Shown here one piece after another: positions 1,755-46,615 of a DNA stretch of 64,000 nucleotides. Position numbers and translations under genes: made by a program. A model generated the notes under the pieces. That model was not told the DNA's origin. It saw only the letters and a list, made by a program, of their open reading frames with translations, and did no database searches. Position 1 is the stretch's first letter. Each line of letters starts with the position of its first letter. The DNA comes from Octopus sinensis (lineage: Eukaryota): contig NC_043009.1 of assembly GCF_006345805.1 (NCBI RefSeq), positions 47,182,001 to 47,246,000 on the forward strand, read 5' to 3'.

Positions 1755-1996
1755 ATATATATATATATATAATATATATATATATACGTGTATTTGCCAT
1801 TGAAATATGGCTAACCTTTAAGAGTGGATGCTACTGTAGTTTGTAGCCCCAGGTGGCCACCGCCTCCAGCTGGCTATAGATACACTTTCTGTGCCCTCTC
1901 AGTATTTGCAAAGGGAAGTCATCCTTCCCGTCTTCAACTTATGATACACACGAACTCGAGTTTCTGGGTATTGACCCATCATCGGCGTGTGACAAT

Positions 1997-2069
<73 letters not shown>

Positions 2070-4012: not shown

Positions 4013-5065
4013 TATTAAATAAATTTTTACTGAGCAACAATTTTCGACTCTATGTATAAAATACACGTACACCCTTACCTGTAACACACACACATGCACA
4101 CACATTAAATCGTGTCTAAAATACTGAAGCATTGAGAAACATGACGGGAGCAAAAGAATTTAATTTAAAGTAAAATTTCCAGAACCATGTGCAACCTAAC
4201 ATTGAATGTATATTATATTTTTCCGGGTTTTCAGCGTTATAAATCTTGTGCAGAATTGCTTGTGGGAAACTCAAGGACTTCGAGTTATATAATCAATCTA
4301 ATATCGATCTAGTGTCAACTATGAACCACAAGTGATTTACTTCAATTACTGCAACAACTGAAATACAAATATTAACTTTTAATCAGTCATTAAGTTTTAC
4401 ATCTGTTGCAAATGTACAATAATCGAAATAAATGTTATTCGTGGAGCTATTTATATATATATATGTATCGCCATATTTTAAAATGGTGTACAGAAGTGGA
4501 CGAATAACTAAGACAGACACGAACACGTACACTTATATGTATGGGTGTATGTGTTTGTATATACACACACATATGCATAGCGAGGCAGGGGGATGGCTGT
4601 GTGGTTATGAAGCTTGTTTCCCAACCATATGAGATTCAAGGTATGTGGGACAACATTATCTAATGTCTCTTGTCCTCATAAAAGACGGGTAGGATGTGAT
4701 TTGGGGAAAGATTTAACTGCTATTTCTTGCACGTCGAGCGACCACAAAGAGGCATTGTCTTCAGCTCATTAAGCGTAGAATTAATTAATATGGTAGTAAA
4801 TAAAAACAATCCTTTTACCCGAGTTCAAATTCATGCTGTCACACAGAAACACAACTCAAACTCTAAAATATAATCCAACGAATGTTTACTTCTTTAAGCT
4901 CTTCGATCTCCGTCGGTGACTTTAAGCCCTTCGCTCCCCGTCGGCGACTTTTCTTCACCGTCCTCAACTCAGGCTTGTCTTTTTCTCTCCCTGGTCTTGT
5001 TAGCTTTAAATCATCATCAGTGCTTCTGTAACTTAGCTTCTAACTAGAGATGTTAGCCCTAGCAG

Positions 5066-5382
5066 CTTGGGCAAGTGTCTTTTACTAAGGCCTCGGGACT
5101 ACCAAAGCCTTGTGAGCGGATTTGGTAGGCAGAAACTGAGAGGCGGTGAGCTGGCAGAAACGTTAGCACGCCGGGCGAAATGCTTAGCGATATTTCGTCT
5201 GCCGCTTTGTTCTGAGTTCAAATTCCGCCGAGGTCGACTTTGCCTTTCATCCTTTCGGGGTCGATAAATTAAGTACCACTTACGCACTGGGGTCGATCTA
5301 ATCGACTTAATCCCTTTGTTTGTCCCCTCTATGTTTAGCCCCTTGTGGGCAATAAAGAAATAAGAAACTGAAAGAAGCTCAC

Positions 5383-5413
<31 letters not shown>

Positions 5414-5606
5414 TTGCTCCCCCATCGTTTGGCAACCGATGTTGGTGTGTGACTTAGCGGTTCAGAAAAAGATACCGATAAAATAAGTACTAGGCTTAAA
5501 AAGAATAAGTCCTGGGGTCCATGTGTTCGACTAAAAACCCTTTAAGGCGGTGTGCTCCAGCATGGCTGCAGTCAGATGACTTAAACACGTAAAAGAATAA
5601 AAGAAT
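5066..5606 (+). mobile_element. SINE B interrupted by a full SINE C (5142-5362)
   Basis: B sequence resumes after the C insert; TSD AGAAACTGA at 5131-5139 and 5363-5371. Confidence 0.88.
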
Positions 5607-10134: not shown

Positions 10135-12480
10135 AATGAGAGGTGAAGGTGGATGAGTGTCAGATCACTTCTTAATGCAGGGTAAGTTGAAGGTATGCTC
10201 AAAATGGAATGCTAGATGAGTGACAAGGAGGAGAGAGGTTGTGAAGGTGAGTGAACTGGATAGGAGGGAAAAGGAGCAGGAGTATGTAGAGAAAGTGAGA
10301 GTTGAATATGAACAGGTTAAGAAACGAGAGGTAGGAGAAGTGGAAGAGGAGTGAGAGGCTTTTAAAGAGGCAGTAATGAGATGTGCCTCTGAGGTATGTT
10401 ATACACAAGTGGTGGAATGGGTGTGAGGAAAGGTAGTGAGTAGTGGAATGAGCAGGTAAGGGATGTGGTGGCAGAGAAGCAAAGAACATTTGAAGAGTGG
10501 TTGCAGAAACGGGACTGAGAGGCTTATGATCGATACAGAGAAGTGAAGGGGAGAGTAAAGAGAGTGGTGAGGGTGGTGAAATTGGAGGCAAGCGACAGGT
10601 TCGGGAAAAAGTCGAGGGAAAATTTTGTAAGAAATAAAAAGATGTTTTGGAAAGAGGTACAGAGGGTAAGGAAGGTGGTTTGAGGAATGGTAGCAAGGGT
10701 GAAGGATATAAATGGAAATTTGAGGATGTACAAAGGAGGTGGGCAGAGTATTTTAGTGAGCTGTTAAATGTAGAGGATGTTAGGGAAGTAAGTATAGTGG
10801 CTGTAGGAAAAGAGAGGAGAATGTCTGTTGTTGGGGAATGGAACTACGGTGCAATTGGAAGAGCGGAGTGAGGGAATCCTTGCAGAAGATCGCAAACCGG
10901 AAGGCGCCAGGTATAGTGGAATGCCTAAAGAAAGGCGGCGTGACAGTGCTTGAATGGCTAGTGCGGCTTATGAATGTTTGTTATATGGCTGGAAGAGTAC
11001 CGAAGGCCTGGTGCAGTGCCTGTATAGTGCCACTGTACAAGGGGAAAGGGGATAAATGCGAGTGTGGAAAATTTAGGGGTATAAGTCTGTTGTGTGTGGT
11101 TGGTAAACTGTATAGAAGAATTCTGATTGTTAGGGTGAGGAACCAGACAGAGAGTATACTAAGGGAGGAGCAGTGTTGTTTTAGGTGTGGAAGTGGGTGT
11201 GCAGATCAAATATTTGTAGTAAGGCAGATGTTTGAGAAGCTTTTGGAAAAAGGGAGGGAGGTGTTTTGGGCCTTTATGGACCTAGAGAAGGCACATGACC
11301 GTGTGGATAGGGATGCAATGTGACAGGTGTTGAGGTTGCATGGAGTAGATGGTAGATTGTTGAGAGCTGTTCAGAGTTTTTAGAGAGACAATAGGGCATG
11401 CGTTAGGGTAGTTGTTGAAGTAAGTGAGTGGTTTTATATGAAAGTGGGGTTAAGACAGGGTTGTGTGATGTCTCCGTGGCTGTTTAATCTATATATGGAT
11501 GATGTGGTGAGAGAGGTAAATGCTAGAATCTTTGGTAGGGGAGGCCAAATTGTGGGAGAAAATGGTGAGAAATAGCAGGTGAGTGAGTTGTTGTTTGCTG
11601 ACGATACAGTACTGGTGGCGGATTCGAAATAGCAACTGAGGAGACTGGTGGTAGAGTTTGGGAGAATGTGTGAAAGGAGGAAACTGAAAGTGGATGTAGC
11701 TAAGAGTAAGGTGATGAGATGCTCGAGAGAGGGAATGGCTGGTAGGATGGATGTGAGTATAAATGATGAGATGTTAGAGGATGTGAGTATTTTTATCTGG
11801 GATCCCATGCGACGGCAGATGGGGGCTGGCTGAGGAGGTGGGATACAGAGTGAGGGAGAGAAGTAAGATACTTGGAATTGTGAAAGGTATGCTGAGATAA
11901 AAGTTTGAGTATGAAAGTGAAAAGAGGTGTGTATGTGGGCGTGATTGTGCCGACAATGTTATATGGTGCAGAGACGTGGGGTCTGAGAGAGGGAGAAAGG
12001 AGGCGACTAGATGCGTTTGAGATGAGATGTCTGAGGGCTAAAGTTTGTGTGACACAGATGGACAGGATGAGGAATAAGCAGGAATGAGAAAAAAAACTAA
12101 CAACCAAATTGGATAGACGAATGTTGAGGCGGTTTGGTCACATGGAGAGGATGGATAAAGAGTGGATGGTAAGAAGAGTGATGAAGGCAGAAGTGGTAGG
12201 CAGCAGAACCAGAGGCACACCTCGGTTGTGTAGATGGATGGAGTGGGGAAAGCTTTGGTGGTTAAAGAAATTGAAGTAAGAGAGGCAAGAAAATTTACAA
12301 CTGATACGAAAGCTCGGAGAGTGCGGGGGTAAACCAGCTGCTGATATTGGAGGTTGCCTTAACCTAGCATAGAACGGGGCTCACCTCTTTGAGCTTGGAA
12401 ATGAATGGAATGCCTTGTGTGTGCCTTGTTGTGGCTACCCACTCCAAAAAATGGAGAATAGACCTGGGTATATATATATA
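10135..12480 (+). mobile_element. RTE-clade LINE, 5'-truncated, dead (ORF2 pseudogene plus 3' UTR)
   Basis: APE end motif VSDHF, RT motifs GKGDK..C..FRGISLL, FMDLEKAHDRV, GLRQGCVMSPWLFNLYMD, LLFADDTVLV, and C-terminal LYGAETW..R..DAFEMRCLR; many stops and frameshifts. Confidence 0.92.
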
Positions 12481-17859: not shown

Positions 17860-18285
17860 GTAATATTTCATTTTATTATTCATTATATTTAAAAACAAAA
17901 CACTTTCGCATGATTTATGTTCTCAATTTTACCTTCTAAAGTCAGCAAAATAAAAGCATACGTAGACCTTTCCTTAGCATTCTCTTTCTGAACAAAACCC
18001 TTTCATGTTTTATAATCAGTTAAATTGTCAAATTTAAAGGTGTTGAAAATGCTTTTTTTAAACACTGCTATAAAAATATCAATTTTTAGAAATTATGACT
18101 AAGTACCATCTTCTCTAACATGCAAGTTGACATTTTCAAACAAAAATATATAACACCCTCACACCACCACCACCACCACAAACAAAGAAAAAAGGTAGGT
18201 CGACTTGTACACCAAAACAACTTTAAAAGATGAAAAACAATTCCTTGTGAAATTCATCAGGATTTTAAAAGATAGTGACGATAGT

Positions 18286-18668
18286 GGCGCAGGAGTGGCT
18301 GTGTGGTAAGTAGCTTGCTTACCAACCACATGGTTCCGGGTTCAGACCCACGGCGTGGCATCTTGGACAAGTGTCTTCTGCTATAGCCCCGGGCCGACCA
18401 AAGCCTTGTGAGTGGACTTGGTAGACGGAAACTGAAAGAAGCCTGTCGTATATATATCTATATGTATGTATGTGTGTGTCTGTGTTTGTCCCCCTAGCAT
18501 TGACAACCGATGCTGGTGGGTTTACGTACCCGTCACTTAGCGGTTCGGCAAAAGAGACTGATAGAATAAGTACTGGGCTTACAAAGAATAAGTCCCGGGG
18601 TCGATTTGCTCGACTAAAGGCGGTGCTCCAGTATGGCCGTAGTCAAATGACTGAAACAAGTAAAAGAA
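18286..18668 (+). mobile_element. SINE B, full length
   Basis: GGCGCAGGAGTGGCTGTGTGGTAAG head through GAAACAAGTAAAAG. Confidence 0.9.
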
Positions 18669-19339
18669 AGAAAAGAAAAGAAAAGAAGAATGTTTGAATG
18701 TTTACATATTTACACTATATACAACTTGGACTAGTATGCCAGAAAATACAATGCCTAAATTTCATTGACTAGGCAGGAATCTTCTACTGGATGGTCTATC
18801 GCAAGTTTTCGTAGCCTATTAATCAAGACTGGATAAAAAGAGGGTGATAAACACGTTTTTCAAGATGATCAGTCATTAAACGTGCGTTATAATTAAAGCT
18901 TTATATACGTGCGTATGTGTGTGTATGTATGCATATGTATGTATATACATACATGTGTGTGTATATACATATATGTGTGTGTATATACATATGTATGTGT
19001 GTGTACATACATATGTATGTGTGTGTGTAATGTGTGGGTAATATTCCTATGTATCTATATATACACACACACATTTATATTTAAAAAATTATATATATAT
19101 ATATATGTGTGTGTGTGTGCGCGTGTGTTGAATTCCCGACATACCAAGATATCTCTTGTGACATACCAAACGGGTTCTCTATCTAACGCCCAAATTATTG
19201 GTATGAAATTTAAGAAGGCCAAGAAACGTCACTCTTAATTTTGTAATCAACTTGTAGAATCCAGATTGTATGTTTTAGGAAAGATTTTTGTTACTCATCG
19301 AATGTATTAGAAAAAATGGGACACTTTCTGTGGGAGTCA

Positions 19340-21791: not shown

Positions 21792-22389
21792 AAATATATA
21801 TATTTTAAGGCATTAATAGTTTGATGATAAACAAGGATTTCCGACGAAATGTCAATGATGAATGTGTTTTAGATATTGTTAAATTGGCTTAGATATTTAG
21901 GTTTGTCAAAGGCAAACTTCTTAATTAAATTTAAATCATAACTGGCAAAAAGATTCATTATTCTGTTCTAAGTCATTTATCGTTTGGTGGTAAACAAGGG
22001 ATTTCGAATTGCTAATAATCAAAGAGTTAGAGATAGTGATAGAACCGAGGAAACCATGTTTCCATTGCTATTTTCATAATGCTGCTGCTATCTGTCGGTC
22101 GGTCGTGGTTCCTGATAGAGAACTCGTCCCGCGTCCCCGAGAAAAATATCTAGAGGTGTCACAAGTATTTTTCTTCGTTTTTTTTTTTTCGGGGTGACAG
22201 GGCGAGATTTGATCCCAGAATTCCTCGACCCGAAACAAATAACACAATGCATCCCATTCTCCGGTCTAACGATCCATCAGTTTGTCGCCCTCGATGGATC
22301 CTTAAAAGATGAAAAGAGAATTTGAACTCAGATACAATGAGACGTTCTATCAAACCACTCTAACAACCCTGCCACTAAACAATTTTTCA

Positions 22390-23006
22390 TATTTGGGGAC
22401 AACGCCAGTAATTTTGGGTGGAGTGGGGTGGCGTAAGCCCATTACATCGACCCCAGTGCTCAATTGGTACGCCAAAAGGATGAAAGGCAAAGTCGATCTC
22501 GGTGGAATTTGAACTCAAAACACAATGAAAGACGAAATGCTGCTAAACATTTTGCCCGACGTTCTAATGATTCAGCTAGTTCGCCGTCTTAAGCCGTCCC
22601 AAATATTGATTTCAAATTTTGGTACAAGCCCAGTAAGTTCGGAAGAGTGAGGGAGTCGATTACATCGACCCCACCAGTGTTTAACTGGTGCTTATTTTAT
22701 CGTCTTCGAAAGGATGAAAGGCGATGTCGACCTCGACGGAACTTGAACTTACAACGTAAAGACAGACTAAATGCCTATTTCTTTATTACCCACAAGGGGC
22801 TAAACATAGAGGGGACAAACAAGGACAAACAAACAGATTAAGTCGATTATATCGGCCCCACTGCGTAACTGGTACTTATTTAATCGACCTCGAAAGGATG
22901 AAAGCAAAGTCGACCTCGGCGGAATTTGAACTCAGTACGTAGCGGCAGACGAAATACTGCTAAGCATATCGCCCGGCGTGCTAACGATTCTGCCAGCTCG
23001 CCACCT
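22390..23006 (-). mobile_element. SINE array C2 - partial C2 - C
   Basis: Three successive GTCGA(T/C)CTCG...AATTTGAACT blocks; duplicated flank TTAAGCC..AAATATT at about 22589 and 23007. Confidence 0.85.
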
Positions 23007-24123: not shown

Positions 24124-24267
24124 TATATTAAATTAGAGATAAAACCACTATTAGGAAAATCATACAATGAAAAACTTAAGCCAATACATAAGATTAATTA
24201 ATTTATATTATTTTAAATATATATCAAAATTATTAAAAAAAGATAATTAGTATAACACTACGATCGT

Positions 24268-24324
<57 letters not shown>

Positions 24325-24599
24325 TATATATATATATAGTTAATCCAAACATAAAAGCACAAAAAACACAACAACGCGAGGACGTAGAACAAATATAGTA
24401 ATATATATATGTATACTGGAATTTAGAATTTATAAATTTTACGTTAGTCAAAGCAAACCGTACGACGAGGCTGGAGAAAGCACAAACAAGTTTGTTAGTT
24501 ATACCAACAAAGGAAACATCGCTCAGGATGTGACACAAACTAACGTCACGAAACTAGAGGTTGCCATTATTATTTGCTTTAACGATATAATCAGACCGA

Positions 24600-25000
24600 T
24601 GTCGACTGTTTATGATGATGTTATTTAATTAACATGGATTAACATGGTACTAGATATACATTGTAACCTGATATCTAACTGTTAGTCGAAAATATTTTTA
24701 TATTTACTTTGAACAAATATTACACCCATTTGATGAACTGGTATTTACTGGTGTTGCTACTTCAAACATGAAATGTTTCGTTGTTCTTCAATTCTGTTGG
24801 TAAATTATCCAGAATCTTCTATAAATATATCTATCTTTTTAATTCCGATTATATGGCACTTATTGGTGAATCTACTGCATCTATGCATCCACAATGAGAA
24901 TGGCAATGGTTTGTTAGCATCACTACAATTATAAAACAGGTTTCGAATATGATTGTTGCTAGGAGTGAGCCCAGGAAGGAAGAGCAGTCAAGTTTTTATC
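24600..25000 (-). mobile_element. Highly degraded Penelope-like RT remnant
   Basis: Minus-strand pieces SSFLGSLLATIIFE (GSPL..LANI), SLWMHR (W.RYVDD region) and FTNRIEEQRNIS (FT.E.E..IPFL). Confidence 0.45.
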
Positions 25001-25861
25001 TTGCGTTCAAATTTCGTAAACAAAATATAATTAAACCTATTTGAAAGAAAAAAATAACAATGAAAATATTGGGTTTGAATATAAAATATGACCAAGTTTT
25101 TCTTGTATTAAAATAATCGGCAACATTAGCAGCAGGAGTGGTAGTAATAGTGTAACTACATCATTACATTAATATTTATGATGATGATGACATCAGAAAC
25201 GAAACACAGAATTTGACACATCAACAAAAACAATCTTAGAAAAACGTTTTTTAAAAAGGTCAGTACAAACCAATCATGGGCATCTCATCCTCCAGTCACT
25301 TAAAACAGTCAAATGGTTCCCGTAGGAGTTTTAAACCAACTTTTCCAAATCTTTTCGTGGGAGCTAGTCGGAAGATGATGGACGGACAGACGTCCAGTTT
25401 TCGATTTCACATTAAGAAACAATCCATTGAAAAATCTTGTTTTAAAAATGATATTGAAAATCTACTGGAAAGTTCTCTGGAAATCTATCAGGTAGGTCTC
25501 TTCGATTTCCTCCGTTCTCATAAACAAATGAGTTATATGTGTGTTCGTTTGAGTTTTTCATCACACTAAGTTACTAAACACGATACACATTTATTGGAGA
25601 TTATTTTGTATGAACTCTTTTCAAATTTTGGACTTTGACCACACCAACTTCCATTAGAGCCAGTCGCGATCTTTTATTTGTCACGTGTTCACGTGCTTTG
25701 TAATTCTACGCATCACGAGGAAATGTATCTGTCAACAAGTAAATATTTACTTTGCCGGATGACAAATATTAGAATCTTCACCGATAACAATTTGCAAGAA
25801 TATGTAACTGTGATAGTTTTAATTTACATCCTCAATGCTCCCGATGAGGACATACTACATA

Positions 25862-26245
25862 TTGGTTTTAAATTTTGGCAAAAGGCCCATAATTTTGGGT
25901 GAGTGGATAAGTCGATTACCTCGACCCCAGTGCTCAACTGGTACTTATTTTATCGATCGCGAAAGGATGAAAAGCAGAGTCGATCTCGACGGAAATTGAA
26001 CTCAGAACATAAAGACAGACGAAATGACGCTAAGCATTTGTCCGGTACGGTAACGATCCTGCCAGCTCGCCACCTTGTAGTCACACTACATATTCTTTTC
26101 TACCCTAGGCACAAGGCCCTAAATTTCGGGGGAGGAGGCCAGTCGATTAGATCGACCAAAGTACGCAACTGGTACTTAATTAATCGATTCCGAAAGAATG
26201 AAAGGCAAAGTCGACCTCGGTGGAATTTGAACTCAGAACGTAAGG
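25862..26245 (-). mobile_element. Tandem SINE C2 pair
   Basis: Two C-type bodies with C2 tails. Confidence 0.8.
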
Positions 26246-26749
26246 CACACTACATATATTATCTTAGTATTGTTTGAAACAACAATGTCAGAGAGTAATT
26301 ATTTGGTTCCATCTCTTCGGTAGTAAAGATTGGATCTAGGATGCTTTGAGGTCCCGACAAGAATTGGCAAACTCATAATAAGTCAAAGTTGCATTGAAGT
26401 CTGAAAATGGTATTGAAGTCAATTTCTCTCCTTACCATTGGCAATGCTGTGAGGAAAGTTATGAACATCGCAAATTCCATGAAATGTTGTAAACAGAATT
26501 GAATCAACTCCAGTATATTTTATCAGCTTTACAGAGAAGTCAAAATTGATCCCGATGGGGTTTAAATTCAAAGCAAGAATAAATTCTTCAATGTATTTAG
26601 ACCAATCAAGCACACACACATTACAAATGAGTTTACAGTGCTGTGGTTTCTACAACCATTTTGGGGGGTTCAAAACTGAGTAAGAAACTTTCTATGCTGG
26701 AGTCAGGACGGATTGATAAAATAAGTACATGACATTATTGTTTTTAATA

Positions 26750-27230
26750 TTAATCCTTTTCTTCCAAGCTGGGAAATAAAACTTCGATGATTTGGATGGC
26801 ATTCAGCAAGTCTTTCGCAAGTCTTTGTTACTTTCCTCATGAACCGATTCCTTTCACTTGACTTACCTTCAACTGTTCTATGTCCACTGTCATTTGGCCG
26901 TCCTACTTTGTACTTTCCAGGTGGTGTTTGCCTTAATGCTACCTTAGGTATTCTTTCTCAGTCCACTCCGAATGCAGGGTCCAGCCATCTAGGTCGCCGC
27001 CAGCATTATATTTCAAGGACAACAGTTTTGCAACCAATTTTCCAGTGCAGCTTTTCATTTCAAATTTTGTTAGAAATTAAGATTTAATAGATTTAATAGA
27101 TTTCCTCAGGTATCTATTGTGGATTGCATTGATCTAATTCATTAACTGGACAGATTTGACATTGTTCAGATAGAGAACACGGCGTATCAAAGAAATATGC
27201 CAATATTATTGCGATGTCTCTTATTACTAA
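26750..27230 (-). mobile_element. RTE LINE 3' fragment
   Basis: Minus strand RRRPRWLD...RIPKVALRQTPPGK..GRP matches the RTE C-terminal RRW.W.GH..R...PK.AL.W.P.G.R.RGRP. Confidence 0.7.
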
Positions 27231-27399
27231 TAGTTTTAAACTGAAAAACGAAAATGATTGAAGACGCTTGGCTAGTCCTAATTGATGGAGGCATTATACC
27301 TTCGTCTCAAATATACCCTCATTATTCATGATGTGTTCCAGGTGGACTTATAAATACATTACACAATACCCTCTCGAGGGCAAAAAAGTTATATTTTAT

Positions 27400-27850
27400 C
27401 AATTGCAAATCCGCTTTAAGTTTATTTGCAATGCTTTTCTATCTTAATGGCATTTAACTTGTTGTTTATGCATCCTTAGAAAAGTATTACCTTACATGCT
27501 GGTGTCGCCACTAGCGACACATTATCAAGCTATATAAATCTTTCAGAGAACTCCTTCAAAGTTTACTTGCGCCAACAAATATCTCATCCCGCCATTGCCA
27601 CATTGAAATACTTCGGAACTTTCGAAATATATTTGGAAATTGAAAGATTAAGTAGAGACGGGGATTTTACGGGCAGTATTACATAAGATGCAAGCATCTA
27701 CGAACAGAGAAAAATGAGGAAAACAATGCCTCACAGAAAAATACCATATAAATCATCATCAGAGTCAATCTTACATTTCAAGGAAAGCGAATGATTTCGA
27801 CGAGCCAAAACATGCTCAAAACATGCTCCTTTGACAACTTGAAAGCCCCA
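27400..27850 (+). mobile_element. Penelope-like element GIY-YIG endonuclease remnant
   Basis: YINLSENSFK (YIG.TE..FK), SELSKYIWKLKD at about 27613-27648, and CLTEK are hallmark PLE GIY-YIG motifs; disrupted by stops. Confidence 0.6.
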
Positions 27851-28127
27851 TCTGTCTCCTTAGAACAATGCAGTGACAGGTCACAGCAGACTTCAATGAT
27901 CTAAAACGCTAAAGTCGTTAGCAGTCATTCTACTCTTTTTTTTTTTTCCATGCCTCTTATATGCACGGCGACTCGAAAAGCTGATTAAACGAAACCGTAG
28001 TCCGTGATAACAATCGGTGTTAATCTCACGCGAAAACAAAATCACACACGTAAACACGCTAACTCACAAGCACACACACACATGCATGCATACATACACA
28101 CACACATGCACACACATATGCAGATAG

Positions 28128-28162
<35 letters not shown>

Positions 28163-28192
28163 TATACATACATAAATATATGTATACAAACA

Positions 28193-28227
<35 letters not shown>

Positions 28228-28303
28228 GCGTACCTTCACACAGTACTACACATATACACAAATATATACATATATACATACAATTGAACATATGTATGTG
28301 TAT

Positions 28304-28341
<38 letters not shown>

Positions 28342-28632
28342 ATATACATATGTGTGTGTGTGTGTGCGCGCGCGCACCTGTATTTATTTATGTCTGAGCC
28401 AATAGGGATTAGACCCAAGACCGCAGTTTCCTTCGATTAGACTTTCTTTTCTTATTTCTATAGAAGTTTTATTCCTATGAAATGCATTAATTCTACGGAG
28501 GTGCCCGATCTGTTGCACGAAATCGTCCGAATGCTTTTCTTAGTTCTACTACAGGGAATGCAGACTAACTGCACGGGGTTGACCGAACTTTAACATCTAT
28601 AAGAAAGGACAGCTGTTAACTCTGTTTTTCTG

Positions 28633-28692
28633 TCTTCAAGTCTCCGCTGATGAGTCGAACTTTATCGACGAAACGAGGTCTGGTCTTGAAGA
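28633..28692 (+). ncRNA. Candidate type I hammerhead ribozyme in the sense orientation of the formin pre-mRNA
   Basis: UCUUCAA..CCG-CUGAUGA-GUCGA ACUUUA UCGAC-GAAA-C GAG GUC-UGG..UUGAAGA. Confidence 0.65.
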
Positions 28693-28937
28693 AAAGAAAG
28701 GTATCCATTTATGTACGTATGTATGTACATAGGCATGCATGTAGGTACGCATATAGGTATGTGAATGTGTGCGTGTATGTATGTATGTGTATAAAAATGT
28801 ATGTATGTTTGTATGTGTATAAAAATGTATACATTTATATATATATGTATACATATGTGTATATATTTATATATGTGTGTGTATACGTGTATATGCATGT
28901 TTATATATATGTATATATATATAAATATATATATAAA

Positions 28938-29070
28938 GTTAATCCAAACATGAAAACACAAAGAGAAAACACAACAACGCGAGGACGTGGAACAAATATA
29001 GTATTATTGGACGCTCAGGAAAGAAGGGAAGAAGGAGGGTTTAACGTTCCGAGCGGAGCTCTTCGTCAGA
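28938..29070 (-). repeat. (TA)n-associated repeat carrying a degenerate minimal hammerhead; shorter copies at about 24338-24400 and 31308-31340
   Basis: Shared AGTTAATCCAAACA..AAAACACAAA..ACAACAACGCGAGGACGT. The minus strand of 29039-29070 reads CUGACGA-A-GAGC UCC GCUC-GGAAC-GUU-AAAC. Confidence 0.7.
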
Positions 29071-29302
29071 CGTACACACACAGATATATGCTCGGTACCC
29101 GCAAGTATATGTGACTTGATAGCATGTTCCGTGTTTTAGTTAATTCTTTAAGTTGTCCATCTAGTCGTGAAGACACATAGATGCCCTCTTGTTTCACCCA
29201 CCCTTGATAATTAATTTTATTCACTTGAGAGAGCTGATGGGCTTTTTGGTCACAACCCTAGTCGAGGAGTTCACGAATTTTATATCTATTTTTACTTTTT
29301 TT

Positions 29303-29716
29303 TTTACTCTTTTACTTGTTTCAGTCATTTGACTGCGGCCATGCTGGAGCACCGCCTTTAGTCGAGCAAATCGACCCCGGGACTTATTCTTTGTAAGCCC
29401 AGTACTTATTCTAGCGGTCTCTTTTGCCGAACCGCTAAGTGACGAGATGTAAACACACCAGCATCGGTTGTCAAGCAATGCTAGGGGGACAAACACAGAC
29501 ACACAAACATATACACACACATAAATATATATATATATATATATACATATATACGACAGGATTCTTTCAGTTTCCATCTACCAAATCCACTCACAAGGCA
29601 TTGGTCGGCCCGAAGCTATAGCAGAAGATACTTGCCCAGGATGCCACGCAGTGGGACTGAACCCGGAACCATGTGGTTGGTAAGCAAGCTACTTACCACA
29701 CAGCCACTCCTGCGCC
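29303..29716 (-). mobile_element. SINE B, full length
   Basis: Reverse complement of the 18286 copy. Confidence 0.9.
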
Positions 29717-29829
29717 TATTTGTATATATTTTTAAATATTTTGCTCGCGATTCGTCACGCCATATGCCCTTCATCTTGATTCAGTTATCAACCAGACTTG
29801 AAATGCATATCCATCTATGCAGACATCTT

Positions 29830-30115
29830 TTCTGCTTACCATTCCTGGGGCGGGGGGTGGGGGCATGAGGGTAGAGTCCTTAGGCACTTTTTCCATAGGG
29901 TTCTATGAGAAGCGATCGTCATTACACTTTTTGGCTGGGTTCCCCAAGCGAGACTAATTGAGACTATAAAACTATCCAATCGTGACGTTCTTGGTCTAAC
30001 CTCAAGTCTCCTACTGGTTGGCTCGGCTTGAAGAATCCGTTTTGCTATTCTTTCCTGTGATATTCTAATCATACGCCCGTAGCAGCTGAGCTGTGAGCTC
30101 TCAATGGGCCTCACA
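29830..30115 (-). mobile_element. RTE LINE 3' fragment
   Basis: ORF IESSQLSCYGRMIRISQERIAKRILQAEPTSRR.EVRPRT, matching IE..QLRW.GH..RM..ER.PKR.L.A.P.G.R.RGRP.T. Confidence 0.75.
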
Positions 30116-30384
30116 AAAATCTGTGCTTAATCAAGGCAATATTCGGTAAAAAAAAACTGATATAGTACACATAGTGTCTAAGTAGCAAACTTGTCAAAAT
30201 TTCATACAGGATTTATGCAGGAACCTTGCTTGAATTTGTCAGTTATCATAATAATTGCTGAGCCGTTCAACGAAACGTCACAAAACCAAGCATAGTCATT
30301 GCACAGGAGCAGATAGCATGAAGTCTATTTTTAGGCCGACTCGGTAGGCTGGCGATCAATGGCTTCACATTTTTAGCACAATAA

Positions 30385-30790
30385 CAAGACTTTTAGAGGG
30401 AGGGGTAAGTCGCTTACATCGACTCTAATGTTCAATAGTGATTATTTTATCGGTCGCGAAAGGATAGAAAGCAAAGCCGACATCGGTGGCATTTGAACTT
30501 CGAACATAAAAAACCTGAAGAAATATCGCTAAGCATATTTGCTGGTGAGCTAACGATTCTTATTTCTTTACTACCCACAAGAGCTACACACAGAGGGGAC
30601 AAACACGGACAGACAAAGGGATTGAGTCGATTACATCGACCCCAGTGCGTAACTGGTACTTAATTTATCGGCCCCAAAAGGATGAAAGGCAAAGTCGACC
30701 TCGACGGAATTTGAACTCGAAACGTAGCGGCAGACGAAATAGCGGTAAGCATTTCGTCCAGCGTGCTAACGATTCTGCCAGCTCGCCGCC
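30385..30790 (-). mobile_element. SINE C (30561-30790) inserted into the head of a SINE C2
   Basis: GCTAACGATTCT occurs on both sides of the C body. Confidence 0.8.
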
Positions 30791-31024
30791 TAGGTTGGCT
30801 ATCGCCGATCGTCATCTGCGCACGTCACATGCACTCTGGAAACTTTTAGATAATACTCCGTACGCTTATATATTGAAGAACGCTTTGATGCAAAATCTAC
30901 CACTTCACCTAATTACTGGTCATCTTGCTTCGGCTCACCATTAGGTACTAATTATGGAAATTCAGAGAATGGTAGTCGTGTTGTACAAGCGTTTGTCACT
31001 GTAATCCAATGACGTACAGTATAT

Positions 31025-31258
31025 ACTCTTTTACTCTTTTACTTGTTTCAGTCATTTGACTGCGGCCATGCTGGAGCACCGCCTTTAGTCGAGCAAATCG
31101 ACCCCAGGACTTATTCTTTGTAAGCCTAGTACTTATTCTATCGGTCTCTTTTTCCGACCCGCAAATGACGGGAACGTAAACACACCAGCATCAGTTGTCA
31201 AGCGATGTTGATGGAGACAAAAAGAAACACACAAACACACATATACATATATATATAT

Positions 31259-31309
<51 letters not shown>

Positions 31310-31520
31310 TTAATCCAAACAAGAAAACACAAAAAAACACAAAAAATATATATACATATATACGACGGGATTCTTTCAGTTTCCTTCTACCAAATCCACT
31401 CACAAGGTTTTGGGCGGCCCGAGTCTATAGTAGAAGACACTTGCCCAAGGTGCCAAGCAGTGGGACTGAACCCGGAACCATGTGGTTGGTAAGCAAGCTA
31501 CTTACCACACAGCCACTCCT
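31025..31520 (-). mobile_element. SINE B with expanded internal (TA)n and a short insert of the 28938-type repeat
   Basis: Reverse complement of B; AGTTAATCCAAAC at about 31308. Confidence 0.88.
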
Positions 31521-33186: not shown

Positions 33187-33450
33187 CGGGTACAAATTTG
33201 AATTTACAAACGGGAGTAAAAAGTAGAGTTTACTTATATATTCAAAGAACCGGCTACTCTGAGTCTGACAGGGCGTTTGTAGTCCGTAAAAATGATAGAG
33301 CATTGGATTAAATTCCAAACAATATTTACTATTGACTCAACGTTTTTGAACTTGTCTGACTCTAATTCTTATCCGACTCCAACCCGACATGATGGAATAT
33401 GTAACACACGTATAAATCTTATTCCTTTCCCCGTACCTATAACATTAAAA

Positions 33451-33836
33451 GTGGAGGCGCAATGGCCCAGTGGTTAGGGCAGCGGACTCGCGGTCATAGG
33501 ATCGCGGTTTCGATTCCCAGACCGGGCGTTGTGAGTGAGTGTTTATTGAGCGAAAACACCAAAAGCTCCACGAGGATCCGGCAGGGGATGGTGGTGATCC
33601 CTGCTGTACTCTTTCACCACAACTTTCTCTCACTCTTACTTCCTGTTTCTGTTGTACCTGTATTTCAAAGGGCCGGCCTTGTCACTCTCTGTGTCATGCT
33701 GAATATCCCCGAGAACTACGTTAAGGGTGCACGTGTCTGTGGAGTGCTCAGCCACTTACACGTTAATTTCACGAGCAGGCTGTTCCGTTGATCGGATCAA
33801 CCGGAACCCTCGTCGCCGTAACCGACGGAGTGCTTC
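33451..33836 (+). mobile_element. SINE A (tRNA-Arg-like head, tail ending CCGACGGAGTGCT), full length
   Basis: Near-identical to the reverse complements at 57450 and 59419; imperfect TSD (T/C)ATAACA(T/A)TAAA. Confidence 0.9.
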
Positions 33837-34342: not shown

Positions 34343-34419
34343 GTATCTATCTTTTAACTACAATTTCTATTTTAGTATGCCCATGTTTTAAACAATCATT
34401 ATTATCGTTATTCATCAAA

Positions 34420-35050
34420 GGCGGTGAGCTGGCAGAAACGTTAGCACGTCGGGCGAAATGCTTAGCAGTATTTCGTCTGCCGTTACGTTCTGAGTTCAAA
34501 TTCCGCCGAGGTCGACTTTGCCTTTCATCCTTTCGGGGTCGATTAAATAAGTACCAGTTACGCACTGGGGTCGATATAATCGACTTAATCCGTTTGTCTG
34601 TCCTTGTTTGTCCTCTCTGTGATTAGCCCCTTGTGGGTAGTAAAGAAATAGGTATTACGTCTGTCTTTACGTTCTGAGTTCAAATTCCGTCGAGGTCGAC
34701 TTTGCCTTTTATCCTTTCGGGGTCGATAAATTAAATACCAGTTGCATACTAGGGTCGATCTTATCGACTAGCCCCCTCCACCAAAATTTCAGACCTTGTG
34801 CCCATAGTAGAAAGGATTATTGTTATTCATCATGTAAAGGCGGTGAGCTGACAGAATCGTTAGCACGCCGGGCAAAATGCTTTGCAGCATGTAGTCCGTC
34901 TTCACGTTCCGAGTTCAAATTCTGTCGAGGTCGACTTTTCCTTTCATCATATCGGGGACGATAAAATAAATGCCAGTTAAGTACTGGGGGTCGAGGAAAA
35001 CGACTTTACTCCTTCCCCCGAAATTGCTGTCCTTGTGCCAAAATTTGAAA
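34420..35050 (+). mobile_element. SINE array C - partial C2 - C2, starting 77 bp after exon 3
   Basis: Three GAGTTCAAATTC blocks; duplicated flank TTATTCATC..AAAGGCGG at about 34408 and 34824. Confidence 0.88.
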
Positions 35051-37774: not shown

Positions 37775-38385
37775 GTAGCTGTGTGTTAAGACGTTTGCTT
37801 CCCAATCACATCGTCCCGGTTTCAGTCCCATTACGCGGCGCCTTAGGAAATATCTTCTACAGCCTCCAGCTGACCGTAATTTTGTGAGTGGGTTTGTAGA
37901 CAGAAACTGAAGGAATCCACACATACGTGTGTGTGTGTGTATTTGTATCTTTGTGTTCGTACTCCACCACCGCTTGACAACGGTGTTGTTTTGTTTACGT
38001 CCCCGTAATTTAGCTGTTCGTCAAAAGACCGACAGAATAAGTACCTATTTCTTTACTACCCACAAGGGGCTAACACAGAGGGGAAAAACAAGGACAGACA
38101 AACGGATTAAGTCGATTACATCGACCCCAGTGCGTAACTGGTACTTAATCTATCGACCCCGAAAGGATGAAAGGCAAAGTCGACCTCGGCGGAATTTGAA
38201 CTCAGAACGTAACGGCAGACGAAATACGGCTACGCATTTCGCCCGGCGTGCTAACGGTTCTGCCAGCTCGCCGCCTTCGACAGATTAAGTACCAGGTTGA
38301 AGAAAGGACTGAGCTCGATTTTTCGACCAAAAGTTCTTCAAAGCGGTCTCAGCAAGGCTGCATTCTAATAACCGAAACAAAAGAT
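37775..38385 (+). mobile_element. Old SINE B interrupted by an inverted SINE C (38046-38276, minus)
   Basis: 16-bp TSD CGACAGA(A/T)TAAGTACC at 38030-38045 and 38278-38293. Confidence 0.85.
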
Positions 38386-39277: not shown

Positions 39278-39649
39278 TGCTTTCAATTTCTCTGCAATTC
39301 TTTTAGACGATTTAAATTGTGCCTGTGTTACGAAACCATTTTTCTTTATATCTGTCTTGAGAATAGTTTACTGTTAGTATAACGATTCTTGTAAAAACTG
39401 CTAGCTTGTCTAAAAACAGGCTCCCTTTCAGTTTTTCGTATTACTTATGCTTGATCAAATAGTTGCGTTGAAGATTGTACTTTTTATTAGCTGCAACCGA
39501 ATCTTTACAAATAACACACACATTCTCCATTTACTTCTATGAAAATAATTACCTATCCATTTTACTGCTATGGCTGACAAATATTTTTCTATCTGTAAGA
39601 CTGTCCAAATCTTTTATGAAATTTGCATTATTGATTTTAAATTCTTTGA

Positions 39650-39815
39650 GGCGCAGGAGTGGCTGTGTGGTAAGTAGCTTGCTAACCAGCCACATGGTTC
39701 CGGGTTCAGTCCCACTGCGTGGCATCTTGGGCAAGTGTCTTCTGCTATAGCCCGGGCCGACCAATGCCTTGTGAGTGGATTTGGTAGACGGAAACTGAAA
39801 GAAGCCTGTCGTATA

Positions 39816-39870
<55 letters not shown>

Positions 39871-40072
39871 TTGTGTGTCTGTGTTTGTCCCCCTAGCATT
39901 GCCTGACAACCGATGCTGGTGTGTTTACGTCCCCGTTACTTAGCAGTTCGGCAAAAGGGACCGATAGAATAAGTACTGGGCTTACAAAGAATAAGTCCCG
40001 GGGTCGATTTGCTCGACTAAAGGCGGTGCTCCAGCATGGCCGCAGTCAAATGACTGAAACGAGTAAAAGAGT
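39650..40072 (+). mobile_element. SINE B, full length
   Basis: Matches the 18286 copy. Confidence 0.9.
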
Positions 40073-40689
40073 ATATATGTATAAGCTTAGGGCTCGAGTA
40101 TACTATCTTTGGTAAGTCTAATTTCCTCCTGGAGATTTTCGTTAGAAATGGTCATTCTGTTTATTGTTTGGCTGAAGTCTGCTTTAAAATTTATAGATAT
40201 TTGACTGAAGAATTGTACCATTAAAACTGGTTGTAAATCATCGACGACTCAGCCAGTTTAGAGGTCAGGGACTGGGATAAATTGATCGGACATAGAACAA
40301 GCCTTTCAAAATTGTTAAAAACCTATCTGAATAGCGTAGAATCATCGATACAAGATTTCCCAATTGGTAAGAAGATATATATAAATAGGAAATAAAACTA
40401 GTTGAATAGTGTACTTAAACTGTGTGTATAAAAAATATTGTGGATATTTTATGATTTCGCTTTAGGCGTAGTGAAACTAATATTGTAATAATACATATTT
40501 GTATTGACATGTGTATCTCTACAAATTTGATGCTACAATTAGTGACAAGAGAGAAAAGCTGGGCCTCGACTTTAACGGAAGTGAGACAATAACAATCTGA
40601 AAGAAAGTAGCACCAATTTTTGACATAAAAATTAAAGGAACAACCTTGAAACCAGTCGACTTTTGGGAGAGCTATCATTATATCAGATG

Positions 40690-41179: not shown

Positions 41180-42480
41180 CTCTCCTACACACAGAATCCG
41201 CCATCTATACAAACTGGATGACTTTAACATGTGCCGCAACTTTCGGAACATTATCCAAACCATGAAAGTTACTTCCGTGCATCATGCAACCCACAATCCC
41301 TCCTGCGTCCCAAACTGCAGCCAATTTTTAATTCTTGTCATGAAGATCACCACCAACCATTACGAAATCCTTTTTTCGGCGACTTCACAATCATGAAATA
41401 CTTTTGCGGAGGAAGCGCCCACATTTGCAACCCGCTTTGCACCCAAGTCTACCCAGTCTACATTGAGAAAATCTTTTCCCAAATTACTTCCACCCTTCTA
41501 CTCCATCAAGCAGCCTCAGAAACCTCCTGTCACTTGAATGCATCCAAGCCACCGTTCCTAACGATGTCTCTTTCACTAATTTCTAACAATGCTCTCTTGT
41601 ACTATCCTCAAACCACGTTAAACTCTTCAATTTTTCTTTCTCTTTCGGGATATATTCCACTCATTGAAAACGTACAGCAGTTTGTACAATCCCAACAAAG
41701 ACAATCCCTTTGACCCTACCAACTATCTTACATCTAATAGCTCAAAGATGATGGAGGTACCCGTTAATAACTTTCTCTAACATCTTAACTCTCCATCACT
41801 CCTTTCATAATTACAACTACCACAGCTCTCGTAAAACCAGATCTCCCAGAGACTTAAATTCCTATATCACTGACCAGTTGGCCTTCACACACATACACAC
41901 GGTAGATTTGAAAATCAGTGTTGTTCACTTCGACACTAGCAAAACTTTCGAATACGTTAGGTGCGAATCTCCTATCAAAACTTCCCGCTTTTGGGTTCTA
42001 TCCTTCAGTCATCTATCCACGGCTTCCTCTCTGGTCACATCACTGCTATATCTACTGATGCAGAAGGCGGCGAGCTGGCAGATACGTTAGCGCGTGGGGT
42101 GAAATGCTTAGCGGTATTTCGTCTGTCGTTACGTTCTGAGTTCAAATTCCGCCGAGGTCGACTTTACCTTTCATCCTTTCGGGGTCGATAAATAAAGTAC
42201 CAGTTTCGCACTGGAGTTGATGTAATCGACTTAATCCCTTTGTCTGTCCTTGTTTGTCCCCTCTATCTTTAGCCCCTTGTGGGCAATAAAGAAATATATA
42301 TCTACTGATGCAGCTCTCTGAGGATTCTAATATAGGAGAACACTCTCATTCTATTCAAATGCTTGGCGTCTACCGACACTGAGAACCTGTTCTGGTAAAC
42401 ATATATCCTTAACAAAACAAAGACCGCATTTCAATGACTGGTATTCCTATTCAGAAGCAGAAAAAATGAAAACTTAGGCC
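41180..42480 (+). mobile_element. Degraded CR1/L2-group LINE RT remnant, interrupted by SINE C
   Basis: DPTNY..SSKMME, VHFDTSKTFEYV (LDISKAFD.V) and LVFLFRSRK motifs, with many stops. Confidence 0.6.
42066..42296 (+). mobile_element. SINE C, full length
   Basis: Perfect 17-bp TSD TATATCTACTGATGCAG at 42047-42063 and 42297-42313. Confidence 0.92.
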
Positions 42481-43035
42481 TTGGTCTGTACAAAGCATTC
42501 TGATAAGTTTGTTCAAAATGTACATTTTTGTTATCAGTCTTTCAGTTCTCTCTAATTTCATACGCTCACTTTCATAAGTGCCTAGTTATTCTAATGGCTG
42601 GAAAAACATTGTAAATGTGTAATATATATGATGCATGGACGCCAAAGAAATACGCCCTGTATATTATGGGTGATACACAAGACAGACGAACGGTTAAACA
42701 CCCAATAGTAACACTCCTATCCACTCTTAGAAAATTTCAGAAGCACCTGACATTGGAGAATTACTTCCACATCTAGATCGAGATTTCTACGTTTAATTTT
42801 ATTTGACAAGGAGGCAGTGGGAAAAATCCATTACGATAACGCTTCGTGGTTCCGCATAAAACTTGAAATCTTTCTAGTAGTTTAGTCTAACTGTAATACC
42901 AGTAATATATTTGGGTTGATCAGATTAAATGCACACATATTGCGATGGCATCGAATTGGATAAGAAGCAACCTTTTGGCAGAGGGGTTTAATTTTGTATC
43001 GCAAATTTGTAATGGCTTATATTTATTCTTTGCAG

Positions 43036-43217
43036 ATTTGAATTTGGGGTCCGTCCTAAAAGAACTACGACAGCTAGAAGATAAAAGACTTAGTGTGCAA
43101 TGTGATACTTACGAGCAAGATAAACGCCATGATGACGCCATTTTAACACTGATTAATAATACAAATAAAGGAGACATCAGTCGCCATCAGAGCATGTTCT
43201 TGTCGATATGTCAGAAT
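43036..43217 (+). CDS. INF2: INF2-like formin, exon 4 (end of DID / dimerisation region)
   Basis: TTGCAG|AT...AAT|GTAAGT, 182 nt, phase 1 to 0. Reads (D)LNLGSVLKELRQLEDKRLSVQCDTYEQDKRHDD...RHQSMFLSICQN. Confidence 0.9.
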
Positions 43218-43974
43218 GTAAGTAATTTCTTTGTGTACGACATATATACATCGTTCTATCCACTTCTCAAATTTTGATTGCCTTTTTTTTTTTTTTATTA
43301 AATACGATCTGCTCGAACTGTGTATTGTGACCAGATAAAGAAAAAATATTCGAGCTGGAGTCGATCTTTGATTCTATTCGTTTGCCAGTTTCTTTTGCGA
43401 AAGAAATAATTACATCTTATTTAATAACTCACCAGAAACTGTGATGTGATGCCAACTGGACTAGTACTCTACATTACAAGAAAATTTTTATCACTTGTAT
43501 CTGAATCAAGGATTTTATCGAAGGCATTTTAAATATTACAGTATAGTATTTATTAATCACAACTTTAAAGTAAGACATTTACTTTTGGCAACAGCGAATA
43601 AAGATTAACAGATAATTCTCAACCTTTAACAGTCATGCACCAGTAATTTGCCTTTCAACTAACATTTATATGTAAAAAAAAAAACCAGTTTTCTAATAGA
43701 AAGCATATATTTTACGAACTTACTAAACATACTTTTCAATTCTGTTATGTCTGGACTTTAGCGTTATAAAAGTTGCTAGCTTTTCTCAGGCTATTTTCCC
43801 CTCTTGTATTCTGCACAATAGACAAATAACTTCCAGTCCCTCATCCCATAGGAACAGTGTCAATTTCTGAACCCCTATTTGCGACGGTTCTCTAACCATC
43901 TGGGACCTTCTTTTATATATTTGTCCTTTTCTTCTTGACAGTTTCATTCGTTAATGAAAAATAATTGTGGCATA

Positions 43975-45186: not shown

Positions 45187-46059
45187 CTTTAACACATACG
45201 AGCGAGCTGCTGTATCAATATTCAGCCATATCAAAGAAGTGCGCTAAGGTAGGACAGCGGGTTTTGTCGTTGCTGTTTCGAGAATTCAAGAATGTATATT
45301 GTATGGTATTTGATATACCTGCATTTATCTATGTTGCTCATATACACGTCATTGGACACTCTGAGTTATCATTCTTCGCTCATTTTTATTTAAATTATGA
45401 TAATGATAGATAGAAGGGCTACATACGACTATATTAACCAATATGGACGTGATTTTGCATAAAATTTACATATTTTCAAATTTGATTCATTTGAATATCT
45501 AAAAAAAACATGTGATATTTACTGATAGAAACTTTTCGTCTTTACTAATGTGGTAAAACATGAATCTATTTAGACGAGATATTCACGGTTAGAAAAAAAA
45601 AACTCTGAGTCTAATAGAATTGATAGGAAACTCGCTGTTAGTAATTACGTTAATGGTCACGTTTGGAAATTTTTATGGTGGCAGTCCTATGGTAGCGGTA
45701 AAAGGTTTATGGTTAAAATGGGTAATTAAGTTTGTTTTTGAGTATAGCAAGAATAAATGTATTTATATATTTTTATATCACATAGCGAAATATTTCTCAT
45801 AAAGATTTATTCTATACACAGTCACTTTCGTTATAACGGAATCTTCCCTGTTATGTAAAATATACATGAACTTGTATATTTGTCGTGCATATATGGATAT
45901 ATAGATACGTGTGTGTCATATATATATAATGTGTGCGTGTTAAATAAAATGAGACAACAAAGCCAAGGCTGAGCGGAATTTCCAGGACATTTATAAAGAG
46001 ACAGTCTTACAGCTGTTTCTGGGATTTTAACCATCTCACATCGCCGTTATAAGTTATTC

Positions 46060-46615
46060 CATCTGTTGAACATAGCGGAGTCGCTTGTTTACCGGGGCTA
46101 AGCCATTCCTTACGCTGCTTCATATTGATGTACAGGCACCATTTTTCGTCGCCAGTAACAATTCGGTAAAGAAATTGTTGCTTGTGTCCATGAGTTGAGC
46201 GGTGATAAGCAAGCAAACCAGCGGAGATTGTGGCTCGTTGATTTTTTTGTTGTCACTTAAAGCATGCAGAACCCATGCCCCATAATTCTGAACCTCTCCC
46301 ATTGAGAGAATATAGCAGTGTGGGAGCATTCCATTTTCTCTGCCAGTTCCCTTGTCGTCTGACGAGAATTTTCGTGCAAAAGTTGGTTTATTTGCTCGTC
46401 AAAGAACTCAACTGAACGGCCAGAACGAGGTTCGTCTTTGAAGTAAAATTTCCATTTTTGAACTTGGCATACCAATCACGAGCGATTCTCTCAGCTATGG
46501 CACCCTCTCCTTACACAGCATTAATGTCGCGAGCAGCTTTTGCGACCTTAAAACCTTGATTAAAAGCAAAAAGGAGGTGTCGAAAGTGCTCGTTTTTCTT
46601 AACTTTTTCTTACAT
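46060..46615 (-). mobile_element. Mariner transposase pseudogene, N-terminal half
   Basis: KNEHFRHLLFAFNQG..AAR.INAV, WYAKFKNG, DEPRSGR, RELAEK, WVLHALS, FLYRIVTGDEKWCLYIN..RKEW; stops and frameshifts; truncated before the YSPDL region. Confidence 0.92.

Follow-up and report, generated by a model that had tools for sequence, protein, structure and literature searches.

A solitary type-I hammerhead motif in an octopus formin intron, a probable retroelement relic

The window, by which we mean the whole 64-kb stretch of Octopus sinensis DNA analysed here, carries a type-I hammerhead motif (HHR1) on the sense strand of a long formin intron, within a short unit that is bracketed by microsatellites. 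The reading that we favour, with moderate confidence, is that HHR1 is a solitary relic of a retroelement, of Penelope or retrozyme type, that sits in the intron as a passenger, shows slow self-cleavage or none, and plays no role in formin expression. Nothing in our results suggests that HHR1 cuts or regulates formin RNA. Lone hammerhead relics of mobile elements are common, and have already been described in invertebrate genomes.

Sequence and anatomy of HHR1

Read directly on the plus strand, HHR1 has the order UCUUCAA-GUCU-CCG-CUGAUGA-GUCGA-ACUUUA-UCGAC-GAAA-C-GAG-GUC-UGG-UC-UUGAAGA (28633-28692). Helix I is built in two parts. The distal part pairs UCUUCAA (28633-39) with UUGAAGA (28686-92) over 7 bp, or over 8 bp with the possible G28640-C28685 pair, and the proximal part pairs CCG (28644-46) with UGG (28681-83) through three pairs, G.U, C-G and C-G. 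Between the two lies an internal loop with strands GUCU (28640-43) and UC (28684-85), which becomes an asymmetric UCU/U loop when G28640-C28685 is counted. The 11-nt catalytic core is intact (C3-A9, G12-A14), with CUGAUGA at 28647-53 and GAAA at 28670-73. Helix II joins GUCGA (28654-58) to UCGAC (28665-69) over 5 bp and carries a 6-nt loop, ACUUUA (28659-64); it opens with the conserved G10.1-C11.1 pair, and A9 leads directly into G10.1 with no bulged nucleotide. Helix III consists of two pairs, A28673-U28679 (A15.1-U16.1) and C28674-G28678 (C15.2-G16.2), closed by the triloop GAG (28675-77), and its strand ACGAGGU is non-palindromic, with complementary positions only at C15.2/G16.2. The GUC triplet occupies 28678-80, and cleavage is predicted after C28680.

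Since helix I is open-ended and helices II and III are closed, the topology is that of type I, and the conserved core, A15.1-U16.1, H17 at the predicted cleavage site and the three helices are all present. An earlier first-pass annotation had described a perfect core, a 5-bp stem II, GAAA, a minimal stem III, GUC and stem I, and our reading of the sequence confirmed all of these pairings at the same positions. It had also called stem III 2-bp and non-palindromic, which is likewise correct, as ACGAGGU is not self-complementary.

Table 1 Features of the window, with positions counted from its first nucleotide.
Feature	Position	Strand	Basis or remark
HHR1, type-I hammerhead motif	28633..28692	+	Sequence, descriptor match, simulations, weak RF00163 match, fold energies
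313-bp non-repetitive unit with HHR1	28394..28706	+	Edges from flanking microsatellites and direct repeat; putative 5′-truncated retroelement end or solo retrozyme-like monomer
8-bp direct repeat ATTTATGT, left copy (possible target-site duplication)	28386..28393	+	Sequence
8-bp direct repeat ATTTATGT, right copy	28707..28714	+	Sequence
(GT)30 microsatellite	28306..28366	.	TRF; 28 bp upstream of 313-bp unit, within 28073-28366 simple-repeat block
(TATG)n/(TA)n microsatellite	28710..28935	.	TRF; directly after 313-bp unit
HHR2, decayed hammerhead-like motif	1940..2003	-	Single-sequence covariance model, sequence, one-mismatch descriptor
217-bp unit, HHR2 at its 5′ end	1787-2003		(TA)n arrays both sides
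Drf_GBD	73-1089	+	Pfam
Drf_FH3	42906-43274	+	Pfam
Poly-proline FH1-like ORF	54055-56253	+	Formin part
FH2 pieces	61076-61321, 61828-62043, 63270-63551	+	Pfam
Interspersed repeats, first set	about 1383-1727, 5102-5541, 18260-18694, 29224-29620, 31000-31520, 39552-40112		
Interspersed repeats, second set	about 22300-22940, 25900-26280, 30440-30940, 34350-34960, 37911-38290, 41961-42345		

Formin gene context

A diaphanous-type formin gene runs through the whole window, its exons (Drf_GBD, Drf_FH3, FH1 and FH2) separated by very long introns. HHR1 is intronic, lying between the GBD exon and the FH3 exon, and is read on the formin sense strand; the Pfam domains all lie on the plus strand, which bears out the earlier placement of the motif within a formin intron in sense orientation. 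From HHR1 to the next confirmed exon downstream is more than 14 kb. Some 100 residues are missing between the GBD and FH3 matches; small formin exons in the 1089-42906 interval probably encode them. A counterpart of formin exon 1 with 94% identity (P0001) came from a public sequencing-run assembly, on a 1.4-kb contig that holds the exon-1 ORF only; other counterparts of this exon were 42-45% identical.

Statistical support for the motif and a second hammerhead-like motif

A type-I descriptor was used that demands CUGANGA...GAAA, a G10.1-C11.1 pair, at least 3 bp in helix I, at least 4 bp in helix II, and a helix III made of the 15.1-16.1 pair plus at least 1 bp. The distal 7-8 bp helix of HHR1 falls outside these requirements. 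With both strands of the 64-kb window searched, HHR1 is the sole match, and none of 400 first-order-Markov simulated 64-kb windows contained a match (a much relaxed version matched in 5 of 400). A chance origin of the motif is unlikely.

Rfam found no family at the gathering score in the whole window. For the RF00163 (Hammerhead_1) model the gathering score is 34 bits; HHR1 scores 15.4, with E = 1.2 (501 nt, 4227 families), which corresponds to about 0.04 for this family alone over the whole window. That alignment places HHR1 in a different register, with a second GUC at 28683-85 and a mispaired helix I; we considered this register and rejected it, as it leaves no helix I beside the core. RF02275 and RF02277, the HH9/HH10-like intronic hammerheads, were not listed for the 76-nt stretch holding HHR1 even at E ≤ 10, and the minimum-free-energy (MFE) fold of the HHR1 60-mer is unremarkable (z = -1.74). 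Overall, the motif is real and very probably descended from a hammerhead lineage, though as an atypical or degenerate example.

When a single-sequence covariance model of HHR1 was run over the whole window with filters off, it returned HHR1 itself and one weak match only, at 1940-2000 on the minus strand (11.4 bits, E = 2.3). This second motif, HHR2, reads UAUGAU-UGU-CACACG-CCGAUGA-UGGGU-CAAU-ACCCA-GAAA-C-UCGA-G-U-U-CGUGUG-U-AUCAUA. Its architecture is that of a textbook metazoan type-I hammerhead, with a 6-bp proximal helix I (CACACG/CGUGUG), an internal loop UGU/U, a distal helix I of 6 bp, a 5-bp helix II (UGGGU/ACCCA), GAAA, a palindromic helix III (ACUCGAGU) and UUC. The core reads CCGAUGA, with U4 changed to C, and positions 10.1-11.1 are occupied by U-A; because of these two changes HHR2 is, from its sequence, probably dead. 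HHR1 and HHR2 have a matching 3-nt/1-nt internal loop in helix I (UNU/U). HHR2 is the sole match in the window to a one-mismatch form of the descriptor, which matched once in 150 simulated windows, and Rfam did not report HHR2 at E ≤ 10. It is oriented antisense to the formin gene. Outside the core we found no similarity between the HHR1 and HHR2 units, circular permutations included.

The 313-bp unit and its surroundings

Between HHR1 and the 3′ end of its 313-bp unit lie 14 nt. The ribozyme is the only recognisable retroelement hallmark of the unit, with no reverse transcriptase (RT) or endonuclease (EN) remnant nearby. The unit has microsatellites on both sides (Table 1). Only 6% of the window consists of simple repeats, and bracketing like that of the HHR1 unit applies to only 3.2% of positions. 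The 8-bp repeat abuts both ends of the unit, and shared 8-mers of this kind occur at 1.8% of equally spaced window positions; we regard the repeat as at most a possible target-site duplication.

BLASTN against the window detected no second copy of 28400-28700 or of 26300-28000, and no tandem or dispersed second 313-bp unit was found in the 64 kb. A six-frame translation of the unit had no match at E ≤ 10 among 5.8 billion proteins, and an ORF that starts inside HHR1 (28650-29114) was not on record in an exact-protein look-up. ARAGORN found no tRNA-like or SINE head and no Pol III features in the unit. Its GC content is 41.5%, and its self-pairing is not above that of shuffled sequences (z = +0.53), on which ground retrozyme-style rod-like folding of the unit was rejected. 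A perfectly kept core within a unit that otherwise looks unconstrained may point to youth or to selection.

The first-pass annotation had placed a same-strand GIY-YIG (Penelope endonuclease) remnant about 800 bp upstream of HHR1. Pfam, protein and HMMER searches gave no signal for it. Pfam returned no family at E ≤ 10 for the six frames of 26300-28050, and none at E ≤ 1 for the plus-strand frames of about 24200-26000 and about 28950-31000. A six-frame search with 26650-28045 against 5.8 billion proteins yielded nothing at E ≤ 1, and a full HMMER search with the longest plus-strand ORF there (27480-27683) recovered three unrelated repetitive proteins (NAM/WH1 and similar) and no GIY-YIG or RT. 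The identical Pfam approach does find a LINE RT in the window (RVT_1, 10784-11320). We thus see no GIY-YIG or RT remnant on the same strand within about 4 kb of HHR1. The direct repeats flanking an RT and GIY-YIG ORF that mark the pseudo-LTRs of Penelope-like elements (PLEs) were also not found, with neither such an ORF nor a second repeat copy detected. A PLE remnant decayed past recognition, or a 5′-truncated copy, would also fit the same null result near HHR1.

Two coding fragments were noted in passing. The LINE (non-LTR) reverse-transcriptase remnant that contains the RVT_1 match covers 10638-12084 (+), is broken over several frames, and by its context is not Penelope-type. A minus-strand ORF fragment at 26706-26957 (…PPGKYKVGRPNDSG…) looks by eye like the C-terminal tail of a LINE ORF2, with no support from Pfam or protein searches.

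Predicted folding and self-cleavage

In nearest-neighbour energies, which take no account of tertiary contacts or Mg2+, the catalytic fold of HHR1 has -8.0 kcal/mol, a form without helix III and with an extra G-C pair has -13.9 kcal/mol, and the MFE is -18.6 kcal/mol. The competing fold, which is 4.7-10.6 kcal/mol more stable, pairs G2.1, C3 and U4 with U16.1, G16.2 and the G of loop 3. Whether or not 60-150 nt of flanking sequence is included, proximal helix I has a pairing probability of 0.03 and helix III one of 0.0. For helix II and distal helix I the value is about 0.89 or higher, except at the outermost pair of the latter (0.66-0.96 by context).

For comparison we folded a naturally occurring type-I hammerhead whose helix III is stable, and here the MFE structure does have the hammerhead shape. 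This locus, L004, was one of 8 loci returned by a metagenome scan for the stem-II pattern CTGATGAGTCGA-N(4-10)-TCGACGAAAC; all 8 were unrelated to HHR1 and most were type-III hammerheads, and L004 served only as a folding yardstick. It lies at 4857-4962 of metagenome contig VTLG01014696.1 and is well formed, with a helix III of 4 bp or more and a long closed hairpin upstream.

Hammerheads of newt, axolotl and PLEs make use of a dimer route (PMC4209133, PMC7229834). This route is closed to HHR1, because ACGAGGU is not self-complementary and no second copy lies nearby; the self-duplex of this strand reaches only -0.5 kcal/mol. Invertebrate retrozyme hammerheads that have a 2-bp helix III and a tetraloop nevertheless cleave as single motifs, at about 0.8 per min in coral and about 0.1 per min in mussel, and the mussel hammerhead does so without the archetypal loop-loop contacts (PMC7229834). 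A weak helix III alone is therefore no proof that HHR1 is inactive, and we put the chance of measurable monomer cleavage, at any rate, at roughly a quarter to a third. Judged from its anatomy, efficient cleavage of nascent pre-mRNA by HHR1 appears unlikely. Were the rate similar to that of the mussel hammerhead, a large part of the intron RNA would be cleaved as it is made, since the next confirmed exon is so far downstream. Retrozymes are reported to be depleted from the introns of Xenopus (bioRxiv 10.64898/2026.07.22.740005), which suggests that those sense-strand intronic copies that survive may tend to be inactive ones.

Comparison with known hammerhead systems

HHR1 most probably descends from PLE or retrozyme type-I hammerheads, and it was compared with several published systems. 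With the metazoan retrozyme hammerheads of coral, mussel and the axolotl/newt satellite (PMC7229834) it shares type-I topology, an intact core, G10.1-C11.1, the lack of a bulge after A9 and a short helix III (2 bp with a small loop). Molluscs are among the animals from which metazoan non-LTR retrozymes are reported, and the published sizes are 150-450 bp for the genomic repeats, about 300 bp for the monomers and about 170-400 nt for the RNAs, at low GC (PMC7229834); the length and GC content of the 313-bp unit, and its occurrence in a mollusc, agree with this description. The canonical retrozyme hammerhead has a helix I of 6 bp, a helix II of 4 bp and contacts between loops 1 and 2, whereas HHR1 has 3 bp before its internal loop and a 5-bp helix II; mussel retrozyme hammerheads, too, depart from this form in lacking the archetypal contacts. 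Retrozyme RNA is highly self-paired, low in GC, and expressed as circular RNA (PMC7229834); in contrast, the 313-bp unit is not highly self-paired, and loop 3 of HHR1 is non-palindromic. Finally, the unit is single and not part of a tandem array. Strict membership of the retrozymes fails for lack of this tandem organisation, and only the category of 'solo monomer' would fit, such solo monomers being recognised (bioRxiv 10.64898/2026.07.22.740005).

The minimal hammerheads of PLE pseudo-LTRs (PMC4209133; PMC8557442) resemble HHR1 in lying near the 3′ end of their unit, in being solitary, in microsatellite insertion, and in low predicted activity as monomers. At the HHR1 site, unlike in these elements, we detected neither an RT/EN ORF nor a second pseudo-LTR. 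HHR1 also departs from the minimal form in its helix II (5 bp against 6-8 bp), in having a loop 3, which is non-palindromic, and in passing directly from A9 to G10.1. Because the flanking ORF and these traits are missing, HHR1 cannot be placed among PLE pseudo-LTR hammerheads in the strict sense.

The intronic hammerheads of amniotes (RECK, CTCL and DTNB; Rfam HH9/HH10; PMC6155905) are, like HHR1, of type I; they too sit in introns of protein-coding genes in sense orientation and probably derive from retroelements. Those motifs are deeply conserved and have canonical loop-loop contacts, whereas HHR1 has an atypical helix I and reaches the threshold of no Rfam hammerhead family. The HDV-like intronic ribozyme of CPEB3 (PMC10274809) offers a shared concept, namely an intronic self-cleavage rate that competes with host transcription and splicing, but it is a ribozyme of another class, with a function established by experiment. 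The Schistosoma Sm-alpha SINE-like elements (cited in PMC4209133 and PMC6155905) are likewise short, non-autonomous, dispersed units with one type-I hammerhead and a weak helix III; the HHR1 unit has no sequence similarity to them, and ARAGORN detected no tRNA-like or Pol III features in it.

Origin and likely fate of HHR1

We infer a retroelement origin for HHR1, together with low activity and the absence of a host function. On this view a retroelement with a hammerhead landed in a TG/TA-rich microsatellite of the long formin intron, and HHR1 is its ribozyme; the insertion would be either the end of a 5′-truncated PLE or a PLE-dependent, non-autonomous unit of retrozyme-like or SINE-like kind. 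In its parent element HHR1 would have processed the element's own multimeric or read-through transcripts, a role known from the literature. At the formin locus it would now be a solitary passenger, transcribed within formin pre-mRNA, with self-cleavage that may be slow or absent and with no part in formin expression.

Several published habits of these elements fit such an origin. PLE hammerheads are found near the 3′ ends of their elements, and the elements insert preferentially into microsatellites, (TA)n and (CA)n among them (PMC8557442); genomic PLE hammerheads are mostly single motifs that probably represent truncated copies (PMC4209133). About 30 Penelope families are reported from Octopus vulgaris (PMC13282606). 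HHR1 is sited in a PLE-like manner, with (GT)n upstream of its unit, (TATG)n directly downstream, and the ribozyme 14 nt from the unit end. The location of the HHR1 and HHR2 units in microsatellites is consistent with published PLE habits and with PLE-related retrozymes. The low activity that we propose follows from the 3-bp proximal helix I (one pair of which is G.U), the 2-bp helix III with its non-palindromic triloop, the lack of a partner copy and the more stable rival fold, which together argue for a slow or inactive HHR1 with no formin role.

The closest competitor to this reading accepts the retroelement origin and differs on activity: HHR1 would self-cleave as a monomer at a measurable rate, of the order of 0.01-0.1 per min, so that some formin intron RNA is cut with no selected consequence. 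The perfect core with its G10.1-C11.1 pair, the very stable predicted helix II and distal helix I, and the efficiency of invertebrate hammerheads with a 2-bp helix III as single motifs (about 0.1 per min in mussel; PMC7229834) all speak for this, and the distance of more than 14 kb to the next confirmed exon would leave minutes for cleavage to take place. On the other hand, proximal helix I has 3 bp where the canonical form has 6, loop 3 is a non-palindromic triloop, the competing fold is favoured by 4.7-10.6 kcal/mol, and the reported intron depletion in Xenopus suggests selection against active sense copies (bioRxiv 10.64898/2026.07.22.740005). We consider an active but neutral HHR1 unlikely, while giving it real weight. 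Less probable still is that a repeat-rich intron produced the core words and helices by accident, with no ribozyme lineage behind them. An Rfam score far under threshold (15.4 against 34 bits), an ordinary fold z-score, the lack of a second copy in the window and of relatives in protein or metagenome searches, and the many trials offered by a multi-gigabase genome could all be explained in this way. Such an accident is hard to reconcile with the 0 of 400 simulated windows that match the descriptor, a count that leaves the extra 7-8 bp distal helix out of consideration, with the 3-nt/1-nt helix I internal loop that recurs in HHR2, and with the microsatellite bracketing of both units, as described for PLE insertions (PMC8557442).

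The interpretation that follows from the first-pass annotation is that HHR1 lies in a Penelope pseudo-LTR, with a GIY-YIG remnant about 800 bp upstream, and is a domesticated or otherwise consequential intronic ribozyme that cuts formin pre-mRNA. Its type-I motif and its sense-strand intronic site stand, and its endonuclease remnant is not supported by the searches. HHR1 is indeed intronic, on the sense strand and intact in its core, and there are precedents in the conserved intronic type-I hammerheads of RECK, CTCL and DTNB (PMC6155905) and in the CPEB3 ribozyme (PMC10274809). Yet GIY-YIG and RT signals are absent from the stretches searched upstream and downstream, the anatomy is weak, and the amniote cases were recognised through deep conservation. 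We therefore hold this interpretation to be very improbable, and return to the solitary, slow or inactive relic as the preferred account.

Significance

In its strongest form, a role for HHR1 in the host would mean that it has been co-opted in the cephalopod formin gene, where it would cut the intron as it is transcribed, after C28680 and at a rate matched to the intron's length, and would thereby modulate the amount of full-length mRNA or its isoforms. We judge this extremely unlikely. If true, it would provide the first invertebrate counterpart to the CPEB3 ribozyme and to the intronic hammerheads of amniotes. To our knowledge, few intronic ribozymes on the sense strand compete with splicing, and very few of these, none of them in invertebrates, are backed by functional evidence. 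HHR1 would be of wider consequence only if it were both conserved and active.

If instead the ordinary reading holds, HHR1 is another dispersed retroelement hammerhead, which serves chiefly to annotate a microsatellite insertion of PLE or retrozyme type, and it illustrates that such motifs fall under Rfam thresholds in this genome. The microsatellite bracketing of both hammerhead-like units agrees with the reported target preference of Penelope-like elements.

Other features of the window

Long ORF fragments of the minus strand at 56632-58749, and also at 33405-33788 and 59465-59713 (172, 105 and 103 aa), have the look of a decayed transposase-like or domesticated transposable-element protein and gave no Pfam match; short fragments related to these recur at other places in the window. 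Further minus-strand ORF fragments, at 46010-46475, resemble by eye the N-terminal region of a mariner/Tc1-type transposase, and the 81-aa piece among them has no Pfam match. Recurring translated strings reveal at least two abundant families of short interspersed repeats, which occur in both orientations throughout the intron (Table 1). Together with the microsatellites (about 6% of the window), these interspersed repeat families make up much of the sequence.
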